Source: Bugula neritina (Eukaryota; Animalia; Bryozoa). From it: a stretch of DNA of 64,000 nucleotides. The stretch lies in contig OZ037766.1 of assembly GCA_964035545.1 (NCBI GenBank), positions 28,069,673-28,133,672 of the forward strand, in the 5' to 3' direction. The translations under genes were made by a program, and so were the position numbers. Below, piece by piece: positions 44,416 through 64,000 of the stretch. Below the pieces are notes generated by a model. That model did not search any database. It was not told where the DNA came from and worked only from the letters and a program-made list of their open reading frames with translations. Numbering within the stretch: position 1 is the first letter of the stretch; each line of letters opens with the position of its first letter.

Positions 44416-46562
44416 TTAGTCAATAAGACGCAGGGTAAGATTTCCTGTCGGATTTCCATTCCCATTTCTTAAATACATATTTCCACAGCAAGCCATACAA
44501 TGTTTTTCTGCCATCTGTGGCCTAGCCACATTAAAATATGCATAGGAAACATATCCTAAACACTTTAGTTCCACATCCTCTTCTAGTTGAAATTGAGTGC
44601 CTGTAGAATATGATAGTGCAGTCAGTTGATTGTTTTAATAATATTAATTTTGCCAAATAAGAAAGGTTTTCTCAATTTTGCTATAGCAAATCTTTTTCTA
44701 TTCAAGGGCATTAGGCAACTATACATTATTTTTTACTTACCTTCAATATCAAATCTAACTTTACTTCCATCAGTTGTATATCCTCCACAACCTGAACAGT
44801 TATCAGCATAGCCAACCTCCAGTGGTGTTGTACCTTTTGATATTGTAGAAAATCTCAAATCATCCAATCGTATGTTCAGTGTAGTCAAGTCAATTCCATA
44901 TTTGGTAAAGCTGAAAATATGTAGATCCGATCAATATGACTTGATGATGCTCAGCAATACACATAACATAATAGTTATAGTGATTAACCAACGTATCTAG
45001 TGCATAAAAGGTGACATGAATTTTCAAATTTAATATTTTATATCACTATATTATCTTTATATGTAACTTTATTTTGTGCTGATCGAGGAGGGGACAAATC
45101 TTCAAACAGCTGCTGGTTTAACCTTGAAAATTTCAAGTTACAGAAATATAAATACTTTAATTTTACTCAAGGGTTCACCATACTCACTTCATGTTTGTCT
45201 CTTTACCATGAAGGTAGTTATTTTCAGCCCCTGAAGGTAAATTTAGATAAGCTAAAGCGGCTGAGTTATTGCTGACTTGAAAGCAATAAATGCTGCCAAT
45301 AACTGGAACTCCATTTAAAGATACAGAATAATTTGCTTCCTTGAAGTTTTGCCTGGTTACAGTTGTGGGGCATCCTTCTGTAATGGTTTTACATTGATTT
45401 TCAATATTCACGATATTTAGACAGTTTTGTTTAAGATTTATGAAGTAGTAAGGGTTGGTAACGCATAAATAATAAAGATTATTCTTAATAAACAAACTAT
45501 AGTGTTGCATATTACATGCAATGCATTGGCCATAAAATCAATATATTTTTCATCTTATAGTTTGTTAGCATTACTTCAATTACAAAGGTTAGGCTGTAAA
45601 CTATACAATACTATTTTATAACAAACCGTTGTTGCATTTGAAAAAAAGTGCCCATATTCAAGGGAAATTTACGTTTCATCTGTTATATATATATTATTTT
45701 GACTTAAGTATTACGGCACTCTTTAGGCGCCTTAAGTATAAAACAATGTTTTCAATTTGAAATTTAGTTTTTACCTGGCAACTACACATTCCAACCATGA
45801 TCATCTGTGTTCCACATATGGATATCAGTATACAGAATAATCTCACATATTTTTAACTCTGGGTGGAAGTTAAACCCGTTACACTCTTGATGATTCAGAC
45901 AGAACTAGAAGGTATGAAGTGTAATACAGCTGTAATTTATCTCAGCAAAGCAAAATACATTTTACTCAATATATTTATATTTCTTTAATGCATAATACAA
46001 ACAGTTTTATATGCCATTCACAAATTATTTAAAAATATTGCTATTTTTTAGCAATTAATAAGTTGCCTTATGTTACTGTAGCCATACTGGTATTTATATG
46101 TTAAAGTAGTAATATACCTGAGAACAGAGAGACACTGCTGGTATTTTATTTATTGTTTTTATTCCTGAACCCAAATTTTTTATTCTCTTCTCTTCCTTAG
46201 ACTTTTGGAATCTTAGGTCTGCTCCACTACAGACAATAGTCGTAGCTAAAACACATTACAAATTTTCTGTTTTATTATAGTGACATCAATATATAACAAC
46301 TATAGCCAACTATAATAATGAAGTTTATTTTATAAAAAAATCTAAAACATAATTAATGTGCAAAAAACTTATCCTTTCAGCTTTTACATATTTCAGTACA
46401 TCGTTTATTATAAAATTTGCTAAAACTATAATATAAAAGCACTAATATTTCAAACTATTTTTTATACACACGCCGTTAACTATCTCGATCAGATTAATAA
46501 ATTCAAAACACTTTACCTGAAAAATATAAGCAGTACAGAGTATATCTCACAATACCCTTCAT
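44416..46562 (-). pseudogene. G1: secreted PAN/apple + GON-like domain gene with one nonsense codon
   Basis: Exons 46562-46517, 46245-46118, 45904-45775, 45377-45188, 44910-44741, 44600-44416, all phase-consistent. TAG at 45782-45784 (GWNV*LP versus GWNVWLP in G2). Confidence 0.82.
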
Positions 46563-48439
46563 AACATATTTAAGTTGCAACCTGACTAGAACACGACTTT
46601 AAGAAGAATATAATGTTAATAGCTAAATATTAGCCTTTTATGGGCTAATTTTCAATAACAACATTTCAAAGCTATACATGATTTAGAAAACACTTGTTAA
46701 AAGTCTATTAAAGTAGATTTATCATTAATTAATAAAATTATGTCAACATAGCCTATACTTTATCTAAAACACCAATTGTAAACATTACGATATGTTTATT
46801 TAACAATTAACTTCTAAATAACAACACTTCAAAGCTGAACATTATTTAGAAAGCACTTCCTAAATGTTTAAAGTAGATTTATCATAAATAATAAGGCATA
46901 TGCCAATGTTATAAATTGCTTAATTTAAAAAATATAGGCATTACGTTAAGCTGTAGCAATTAAACCTATGACTAGGTTAAGTGTTTTGTCTATATGCCTG
47001 GGAGGTATTTTTAATTTGATCAATTTTAATATAATGCTGATAATTTCATACAGTAATATTACGGGTAAATTATTTCTTATGATTAGAGAAAAATGCATAC
47101 CTTCTTAAGTAAGCCTTTGATATTAGAGATGAAAGCGGAAGTGTTAACGTTGGCTGATGCAGTCATTTGCAAAGCTTAACAGGATCATGTACCCCAAACA
47201 TTTACTTTAGTTAGTTAAACTAATTTAAGTTAAATTAAGTTATAAAAATCAATAATTAAAGTTTATCAGCATTATATTTATGATTAAACACAAATGCTTA
47301 CTAAAATTCAATGTTGCTTGTAAAATTTCAATTTGAAACAAATAGAAACTTTGGAAACACCAATGATCCATTTTATGTAGCCACATATATATTTCAACAA
47401 ATATTCTAGTTATTATTCAGTTGTAGTTTGTAGCTTGTTAGTAATTTTTGAAATTAAGTGAATTGATGGCCCTTTTCCAGCTGTAGGAAATGACCTAAAT
47501 TAGGAAGTATAGATGCGGTTATATTGGCTAAAGATATATGTTTTTTCTATATATAGATAGTTGCACAGTATACAGTAGCTAACACATAACAACATTTTCC
47601 ATATATTATTTCCATTTTATTTTACACCAATAAGTTTACAAAATGTTTAGGTAATCTTTTATTGAATGGTAATTTCTGTTATTGTTTCATAATCTTTTTA
47701 TTGAGCAAATTCAGGCAATGGGTGTTAATTCACTGTCATATATAATAACTAAATATATTTTGGTCTCCATGGCTTCGATTTATGTATAGGATCTATAATT
47801 CTTTTTATGCCTGATCAACATGACTTGTAATTCTAAATCAAAATAGGCTTTTTTAACACTGTAAATTGCATTTTAAGTCATTTTATTGAAAAGCAACATC
47901 TCTGGAATAAATAACATTATTAAAAAACAATAAATTTCAGACAACATATAGATAATCAATAGGATCACAGTATAACACCTAAAGTAATCCTTGATACAAA
48001 AAACAGTAATAAATTAAAAACATTCATTTACTAAATGTTTTAATGTTTATATTAATACCTTCAACATTATTGACTTCTTTAAATAAATTATTTAAAACGT
48101 TTTCCAAACCCAACGGTGAACCAATGTTGAATTCACATAACCAGATTAAACAGCTTGATTTCCAATTTGTAATATCTTTGAGCAGCCAATCAGAAGTAAG
48201 TATATATACCATTGTTTAACTTGCTAATTTTATGCATGACAAAGTAAAATTATTTTTTATTTAAGCCTGAAAGTGCATCATGCACCCATTTTAAAACCTC
48301 TGAAGCAAAAAAAAAATAAAACTTTGAATCCTAATGTTACTTCATGTTTTAATGAATGTTTTTTATTCAATACTAGCAAAAACAATAAAGTAATCTTCAA
48401 AATTAGTAAGTTATTTAGTCTTTAACAACTCAAAGCATT

Positions 48440-63000: not shown

Positions 63001-64000
63001 TTAGCTATTTTTCACAATTTAAATGGTAACGGACATGGATTTTTGCCTAAAATTAGTAAAACACCAATTAATACACCAAAATAGTTAAGGTTCTTTTTAA
63101 TTTTGCTTGATTTCCCATGATTTTTCTTATTTATTTAGCTTATTAGGAGTGCGGACTGTTACGAAAAAAAAACCATAACCGTCCATAACCAAAATTAGCT
63201 GAATAATTAGGGAAAAACATGGGAAATGAAGCAAAATTAAAAAGAACTTTTATTACTTAGGTGTATTTATTGGTGTTTTAATAGTTTCGATTAAAAACCT
63301 ATGTTTGTTAGCAGTTATATGGTGAAAAATAGCTAAAAACTGAATTAAGTAAAATGACCCTCATATCATAGCTTTTAACCAGAAAACTGTAAAAACAATA
63401 ATCTAAATAGTTGCATGAATGCCAAGATATAGGGGAAAAGTTTCCAGAAAGTAGAAAGATATAGTTATTATTTGATTTTATATTTAAATCACTAGAAGAT
63501 CAAATGCGCAAAATATATTAACATATAGCTGTTACATTTTAAAACTTTGTAAAATAACTTTTATAGTGCCTATATATATATGCAGCTTTCTTGTGTTCAA
63601 TAAAATATTGAGGTCAAGAACTTCCCGATGACTTAAGCAAAAAAGTTGCTGGATACCATGAGCATTTTAAAAAACATAATGAGTTGTAAGATTTTCTGTA
63701 GAACAGACATATTATTTAAACAGCTAAAGAATATTTAATTTCTCTATATTATACTTTGCAAAACCTATAGTTACGTTCAAAATTAAAGCATGAGCTTTTT
63801 ATATCTCAATTCAGTTTCTGTTTATAAGCTGAAAGATTACTAATGCAGTGCTGAACCATAAAGTATATTTAGCTACTGATAAAATAATGTAAACTCAATT
63901 TTAGATTTGTTAAAAAATTTAGCTTATGTGAAAAAAAGCGTTTCTAAACAATTGTGCTATAGAAGCTTGCCCGACTGCAGAAGAAAGACCCAGCTTTAAC
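60018..64000 (+). CDS. G5: PAN/apple + GON-like gene, partial (runs off the window)
   Basis: Exons 60018-60060 ([14 protein letters not shown]), 61721-61845, 62237-62366, 63963->64000 ([12 protein letters not shown]); same exon sizes and phases as G3, no stops. Confidence 0.82.
60731..61042. repeat. Interrupted (TA)n microsatellite
   Basis: Direct reading. Confidence 0.95.
62408..62570 (+). mobile_element. Degenerate copy of the tRNA-derived SINE
   Basis: AGCAACTGTGGTGCAAAGGTTAGAGTGCTT...GAGAGCATTCAGTCATAATTG; no clear TSD. Confidence 0.6.
62958..63360. mobile_element. Foldback MITE with long imperfect inverted repeats
   Basis: GGGTCATTTTACTT ... AAGTAAAATGACCC termini; arms remain complementary for well over 100 bp; related partial copy at ~21040. 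Confidence 0.75.

Follow-up and report, generated by a model that had tools for sequence, protein, structure and literature searches.

A tandem gene family for predicted secreted PAN and GON-like proteins in the bryozoan Bugula neritina

Gene cluster and exon structure

The studied stretch, hereafter the window, comprises 64 kb of the Bugula neritina assembly tzBugNeri2.1 (GCA_964035545.1; 216,009,554 bp; PMC11480708) at G000:C2:28069673-28133672, and it was read together with the adjoining 50 kb (loci L001-L005). It contains part of a cluster of small genes whose predicted products combine a PAN/apple module with a divergent GON-like domain and have no protease. Positions above 64000 are given as extended coordinates, in which 64001 corresponds to L001:1. 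The region is AT-rich (GC ~27-32%) and includes (TA)n microsatellites.

All-against-all comparison of stop-to-stop frames revealed four exon families that recur at five places between positions 44416 and 64000, and exon-level BLASTP between the loci yields E-values as low as 1e-39, so that the similarity is far above chance. The cluster as a whole includes 11 loci (C2:28114091-28169407) and extends ~36 kb beyond the window end. Copies were detected only in this cluster and at one locus on C6 in a genome-wide search with exons 3, 4, 5, and 6, which sets the genome-wide count at 11 clustered loci and one singleton. The clustered loci are arranged as repeated head-to-head B/A pairs 1.5-1.8 kb apart, and they form two subfamilies with ~45% identity between their proteins:

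A-type subfamily, plus strand: G3, G5, G6, G8, G10, and G11
B-type subfamily, minus strand: G1, G2, G4, G7, and G9

Four of the 11 loci (G3, G5, G8, and G10) are intact, and G9 is open in exons 2-6. Three loci (G1, G2, and G11) carry a nonsense codon, and the remaining three (G4, G6, and G7) are fragments or deletion derivatives. The family members inside the window and the C6 singleton are as follows:

44416..46562, minus strand: G1, B-type, exons 46562-46517, 46245-46118, 45904-45775, 45377-45188, 44910-44741, and 44600-44416
48440..50488, minus strand: G2, B-type, exons 50488-50443, 50244-50117, 49899-49770, 49389-49200, 48899-48730, and 48594-48440
52001-55987, plus strand: G3, A-type, intact, six exons, 837 nt, 278 aa, all five introns GT-AG
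58295..58441, minus strand: G4, B-type, reduced to the distal part of exon 6
60018..64000, plus strand: G5, A-type, exons 60018-60060, 61721-61845, and 62237-62366, with exon 4 from 63963 cut by the window end
L015 (G000:C6:15341000-15350999), 6959-4196, minus strand: C6 singleton, intact, 272 aa, the same six exons and phases, very divergent

A first-pass annotation of this DNA had described five related loci with a shared six-exon structure between 44416 and 64000. All five were found, whereas six-exon units are limited to four of them, G4 being an exon-6 fragment. The structure is complete inside the window only for G1, G2, and G3; G1 and G2 are broken by TAG codons, and G5 is cut by the window end. 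The G3 model of the same annotation was reproduced exactly, its exons splicing to 837 nt with an open frame of 278 codons:

52001..52043, plus strand: exon 1, ATG and a hydrophobic signal-like peptide, 14 codons and 1 nt, with the phase 1 donor GTATGT
53209..53333, plus strand: exon 2, which evolves fastest and encodes the PAN module's N-terminal half
53451..53580, plus strand: exon 3, encoding the PAN module's C-terminal half with the C-x5-C-x11-C core (20.1 bits with Pfam PAN_1, profile 30-62 of 76)
54369..54555, plus strand: exon 4, opening third of the GON-like domain (CPT ... IYC ... NLPxGAxxNY)
55436..55605, plus strand: exon 5, central third of the GON-like domain (FTKYGIDL ... DFTF ... 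DNCSGC)
55806..55987, plus strand: exon 6, final third of the GON-like domain (GTQFEL ... CCG ... LRLV) and the TAG stop

Exon 1 of G3 has a best 10-aa Kyte-Doolittle mean of 2.66 and is conserved in G10, G6, G5, G8, and G11. Another candidate for the signal peptide, an ATG-started hydrophobic open reading frame (ORF) at 53372-53461, was rejected, as it sits in the pyrimidine tract of intron 2 before the exon-3 acceptor. This signal-peptide-like ORF could mislead gene finders.

When the G3 model was transferred to the other loci, homologous AG and GT dinucleotides with identical phase (shift 0) were found at almost every junction. The same junctions and phases are present in eight near-complete copies and in the C6 singleton. 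Because homologous splice sites and phases are kept across the copies, there is strong evidence that these are real spliced genes. The C6 singleton retains the same exons and phases despite being very divergent, and the family therefore predates the C2 cluster.

The defective copies differ in the kind of damage. G1 has a single in-frame TAG in exon 3 (45784-45782), at the position of a Trp in the paralogs. G2, a tandem 4-kb duplicate of G1, has an in-frame TAG in exon 3 at 49881-49879, has its usual exon-6 acceptor lost or displaced, and carries a 4-codon deletion besides. In G11 a TAA is located in exon 3 (L004 ~2640), and G7 is an exon-6 fragment. G6 (L001:5202-7082, extended 69202-71082) is a G3-like copy from which exons 2-4 are deleted, equivalent to window positions 52750-55386; joining its exons 1 and 5 would break the reading frame. 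A similar order of exon 1 and then exon 5 occurs in a G5-like copy on two JGI metagenome contigs (L006 and L007), which are considered below. With the next 1.1 kb (to extended position 65080, L001), G5 forms an intact ORF of 279 aa. For G9, in which exons 2-6 are open, exon 1 was searched for and not found.

Domain composition and relation to the ADAMTS-type GON domain

All Pfam searches were run exon by exon, and joined models were used only for translation, alignment, computation of substitution rates, and comparison with the genome's own GON domain. The A-type proteins start with MKL and a hydrophobic stretch followed by an Ala-Ala or Ala-Thr site (10-aa Kyte-Doolittle maximum 2.3-2.8), and the mature A-type copies have an even number of cysteines (10 or 12). 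Neither a second hydrophobic segment nor a KDEL-like C-terminus was found in the family proteins. The Pfam PAN_1 model (PF00024, cut-off 21.4 bits) scores 20.1, 19.4, and 16.9 bits on exon 3 alone in three copies (profile 29-62 of 76), and it gives no match to exon 2 alone. The PAN core C-x3-C-x5-C-x11-C extends across the exon 2/3 junction, and its four cysteines are present in all copies. The outer N-terminal Cys of the PAN module is present in the B-type proteins and the C6 member and absent from the A-type proteins. Genome-wide, the PAN exon matches only members of its own family. The protein layout proposed in the first-pass annotation, namely a signal peptide, a PAN-like Cys pattern, and a C-terminal domain of ~180 aa, agrees with these results: the N-terminus is hydrophobic, the PAN-like Cys core is present, and the C-terminal domain has 178-181 aa.

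The GON domain is, to our knowledge, otherwise known only as the tail of the ADAMTS9, ADAMTS20, and GON-1 proteases. The B. neritina genome encodes such a tail on C4:

C4:12022926-12038165 (L009-L011): tail of the single ADAMTS9/GON-1-type gene of Bugula, in which ~17 TSP1_ADAMTS repeats precede a 209-residue GON domain that is encoded by four exons and ends the protein
C4:12036983-12038147: the true GON domain, with Pfam GON (PF08685) scores of 74.9, 72.8, and 22.2 bits

Because ~17 TSP1_ADAMTS repeats precede it, the C4 domain is assigned to the ADAMTS9/GON-1 orthologue. The Pfam GON model (cut-off 22.6 bits), run against all 216 Mb, recovered only this true GON domain and, below threshold, exon 5 of the C2 cluster. 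On separate family exons, the model matches exon 4 in all seven copies (profile 15-56, up to ~19 bits, best E ~1e-3) and exon 5 in eight of nine copies (profile ~78-129, 14.5-19.9 bits), in both cases below the cut-off. The exon 4 and exon 5 matches follow the order of the GON profile, and their rough sum, with the exons scanned separately, is 33-39 bits, which would lie above the cut-off.

Smith-Waterman comparison of family members with the spliced C4 domain gave scores of 60-75 versus 31 ± 5 for shuffled sequences (z = 5.8-8.6), and none of 1,000 shuffles reached the score. A hidden Markov model (HMM) built from nine family domains scored 35.7 bits on the same target (E 1.9e-9 at Z = 5001), versus a maximum of 15.9 bits among 5,000 shuffles. 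In this alignment, HMM positions 14-54 correspond to GON residues 18-56 and positions 57-159 to residues 93-193, in the same order, and the match extends into the exon-6 part, where CCG stands opposite YCG of the true GON. The same-order similarity to the bona fide GON domain covers ~140 columns and is seen in both search directions. Among 1,300 decoy ORFs, the family HMM ranked a single true-GON exon first (E = 0.014). With hhalign, exon 4 matches a true GON exon with 80% probability (E 1.5e-5), and exons 5 and 6 produce short weak matches at the expected places. The C6 member taken alone is weakly similar to the true GON (z 2.9).

True-GON residues ~57-92, a segment of ~35 residues with three cysteines after the NY motif, have no counterpart in the family, and the gap falls on the exon 4/5 junction. 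Both first-pass proposals about the C-terminal domain, its likeness to GON and the loss of a Cys-rich insert after the NY motif, are supported by these alignments. Exon 6 has a Cys pair in G5, G10, G11, and the B-type proteins, and the pair is jointly replaced by Ser and Trp in G3, G6, and G8. Because both cysteines are replaced together, which is how a disulfide would be expected to disappear, the pair probably forms a family-specific disulfide. Only four cysteines are present in the GON-like part of the C6 member. Searching the PDB by sequence, both for the true GON exon and for the exon 4 and exon 5 profiles, yielded no related solved structure. The ESM Atlas yielded no meaningful neighbor for exon 4 (best score 0.87, with recognition below the useful range).

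Compared with the GON domain of ADAMTS9, ADAMTS20, and GON-1, the family shares the motif order (Cys, Y.L, G, IYC, YL.LP.GA..NY, FTK..L, DFTF, G, DC..C, F.I..T.F, C..CG) and the C-terminal position. In contrast to these proteases, the Bugula proteins have no propeptide, metalloprotease, disintegrin, spacer, or TSP1 parts, and their GON-like domain has its own extra Cys pair and strong sequence divergence. A scan for TSP1_ADAMTS exons detected none near C2:28.11-28.17 Mb and none within 25 Mb on that contig. Each unit has its own ATG, signal-like exon, and stop, and the units lie on both strands. The separation of the GON-like domain from a metalloprotease, also put forward in the first-pass annotation, is supported by this arrangement. 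The three introns of the true GON domain share no position with those of the family, and a tree with the true GON as an outgroup has a very long branch (~7 changes per site) and is uninformative. Because no introns are shared and the branch is very long, the split between the family and the true GON is considered old, and not the result of a partial duplication that the resident ADAMTS gene underwent recently.

Selection, gene conversion, and distribution

Ratios of nonsynonymous to synonymous substitution rates (dN/dS) were computed pairwise from the joined gene models. Overall dN/dS is 0.27-0.45 at dS 0.2-0.5, with 0.28-0.38 for the GON-like part, 0.4-0.9 for exons 1-2, and 0.02-0.19 for exon 3 among the intact A-type copies. 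For the G1-G2 pair the values are 0.32 in the GON part and 0.95 in exons 1-2. Because dN/dS is ~0.3, the family is considered to be under purifying selection. An effector or recognition role, suggested in the first-pass annotation as a fitting function, finds no support in these data, which carry no arms-race signature, although exon 2 evolves fast.

Among the compared copies, exons are 85-91% identical, and aligned intron parts are mostly 64-85% identical. The dS values vary tenfold along single gene pairs (for G3 and G8, 0.05 in exon 6 vs. 0.49 in exons 1-2), and the exon-wise affinities between copies are mosaic. The tenfold variation and the mosaic affinities together point to gene conversion. 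Self-comparison of the region revealed segmental duplicates that are 80-95% identical, e.g., 55387-62373 vs. 70479-77960, as well as the 4-kb G1/G2 repeat. Relative to the paralogous window segment, L001:9303-9820 (extended 73303-73820) is an insertion, with the junction at ~58212-58222. In L001:9200-9900, Rfam yields no match at gathering score, nor a hammerhead at E <= 1. The k-mer depth of the DNA run X1 is ~500-750 in exons 3-5 and ~100 in introns, which fits many copies sharing exons, depth being distinct from copy number. The earlier suggestion of amplification with rapid turnover stands in view of the segmental duplicates and of the six broken or fragmentary loci among the 11.

Outside the assembly, a search of 1.84 billion representative proteins with the exon 5 profile returned two exon-sized ORFs from JGI Bugula metagenomes and four repeat-driven chance matches. 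A word search with the exon 4 profile returned two JGI fragments only, its length window being unable to reach 280-aa proteins from an exon-sized query. The JGI matches lie on short contigs (L006-L008) of metagenomes 3300002729 and 3300003318 and are 77-91% identical to tzBugNeri2.1 at the nucleotide level; these contigs presumably represent host DNA of another lineage of the B. neritina complex filed as microbial metagenome. Family exons on them have been called as tiny "proteins". Two scans of metagenome contigs detected no family relatives, with records close to this genome possibly hidden. These database searches turned up neither a full-length annotated protein nor a match in any other animal or metagenome contig; their sensitivity is limited to approximately 40% identity or above over 56-61 residues, so that distant relatives could escape. 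The family is so far seen only in Bugula-derived data.

Elsewhere in the window, the minus strand of 12308-19532 is occupied by a Ty3/gypsy-type long terminal repeat (LTR) retrotransposon with ~60% GC within a ~30% GC genome. The 544-bp LTR copies at 12308-12851 and 18992-19532 share 99.3% identity. Long open frames encode reverse transcriptase, RNase H, and integrase at 13752-16586 and an aspartyl protease at 16839-17888.

Proposed function and alternative explanations

The product of an intact gene would be a protein of ~280 residues with a short cleavable signal peptide, one PAN/apple module encoded by exons 2-3, and a disulfide-bonded domain of 178-181 residues encoded by exons 4-6. The latter domain is probably a divergent, shortened homologue of the ADAMTS9/ADAMTS20/GON-1 GON domain. 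Because no protease, disintegrin, TSP1 domain, membrane anchor, or KDEL-type tail is present, the protein is most likely a soluble binding protein of two modules that acts outside the cell. PAN domains elsewhere are protein- or carbohydrate-binding modules. In the Bugula proteins, the PAN module may likewise bind proteins or glycans, and the GON-like domain could provide a further module for binding or scaffolding. The family would have grown through repeated duplication of a head-to-head pair in which the B-type member is encoded on the minus strand and the A-type member on the plus strand. It appears to have been kept by purifying selection while copies exchanged segments by gene conversion and were lost to nonsense mutations and deletions. 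We assign a probability of about 0.72 to this interpretation, i.e., real spliced genes for a soluble extracellular binding or matrix protein formed by a PAN module and a shortened GON homologue, with the structural claims counted jointly.

Several observations speak against it. The Pfam PAN_1 and GON scores are below the cut-off for every single exon, and exon 6 alone gives no match to the Pfam GON model. The B-type N-termini are weakly hydrophobic (10-aa Kyte-Doolittle maximum 1.4-1.6), and the B-type proteins have an odd number of cysteines (13). No RNA run is on record; the sole public run found, X1, is DNA, and its contigs span introns and have no splice joints. Recognition and effector families typically show diversifying selection, of which the overall dN/dS of ~0.3 bears no trace. 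The data demonstrate the gene structure, homology, copy number, selection, and lack of a protease, and we infer the secretion, binding function, and expression of the family proteins.

Among the alternatives, a role within the secretory pathway is unlikely overall, although it has experimental precedent. [quoted passage not shown] The gon-1(sig_GON) construct of Yoshina and colleagues resembles the Bugula proteins in having a signal peptide and a GON-type domain without protease, and it shows that such a protein can work alone (PMC4517882). It differs in being an artificial truncation of GON-1, whereas the Bugula proteins are encoded by natural genes and have a PAN module in front of a shortened GON. 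[quoted passage not shown] Against this role, the domain is very divergent (~7 changes per site) and has lost the Cys-rich insert, the genome retains a normal ADAMTS-type GON, and no ER-retention tail is present. Moreover, a tandem array with many dead copies would be unusual for a housekeeping transport factor.

The distribution of nonsense codons raises a related and quite doubtful possibility, according to which the GON-like domain is an autonomous protease-free module and the PAN module is dispensable. In the three copies that are complete apart from a nonsense codon (G1, G2, and G11), that codon lies in exon 3 each time, with a chance of ~0.04 for the three to share an exon. As exons 2 and 3 together comprise 255 nt, a splice from exon 1 to exon 4 is in frame, so that G1, G2, and G11 could make a protein of signal peptide and GON-like domain only. 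If PAN skipping occurs, these copies would be a natural counterpart of the engineered sig_GON protein that rescues secretion in the worm.

It is very unlikely that the whole family is non-functional, with the intact copies being young unexpressed relics in a decaying array. The broken or fragmentary state of 6 of the 11 loci and the restriction of public data to one DNA run without splice joints would fit such decay. However, dN/dS of 0.27-0.45 at dS 0.2-0.5, a nearly frozen exon 3, the preservation of all splice sites and phases, and a fully open C6 singleton in spite of its great divergence are at odds with it.

Convergence of motifs in a Cys-containing beta-rich domain without GON homology is highly improbable. 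The sub-threshold Pfam scores of all exons, the unmatched exon 6, and the z of 2.9 for the C6 member could be read in its favor, but the same-order matches over ~140 columns in both directions, the family HMM score of 35.7 bits vs. at most 15.9 in 5,000 shuffles, and the lack of any other match of the GON model in 216 Mb beyond the true GON and the cluster contradict it. Finally, the idea that the exons belong to the 3' portion of some larger ADAMTS-type gene can practically be dismissed, given a start exon and a stop in each unit, the alternation of strands with head-to-head spacing of 1.5-1.8 kb, and the lack of TSP1_ADAMTS exons near the cluster.

The Bugula proteins resemble secreted PAN/apple proteins (PF00024) as small predicted-secreted PAN proteins with a second extracellular domain, and they differ from them in that this partner is GON-like. 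In a literature search, no paper turned up on a GON protein without a protease or on any "GON domain-containing" family. The first-pass annotation, too, knew of no characterized protein with the PAN plus GON-like architecture. Both domains as such are known, but the protease-free fusion of a stand-alone GON-like domain to PAN appears undescribed, as do the missing insert and the family's expansion in tandem.

The lineage-restricted distribution and high divergence of the family limit its general significance. Within these bounds, as a minimal GON-like family, it may provide compact constructs for structural and binding studies, and it could map the dispensable part of the GON domain, namely the Cys-rich insert, against the conserved parts. 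It would also be an example of an ancillary domain of a protease becoming a stand-alone secreted protein.

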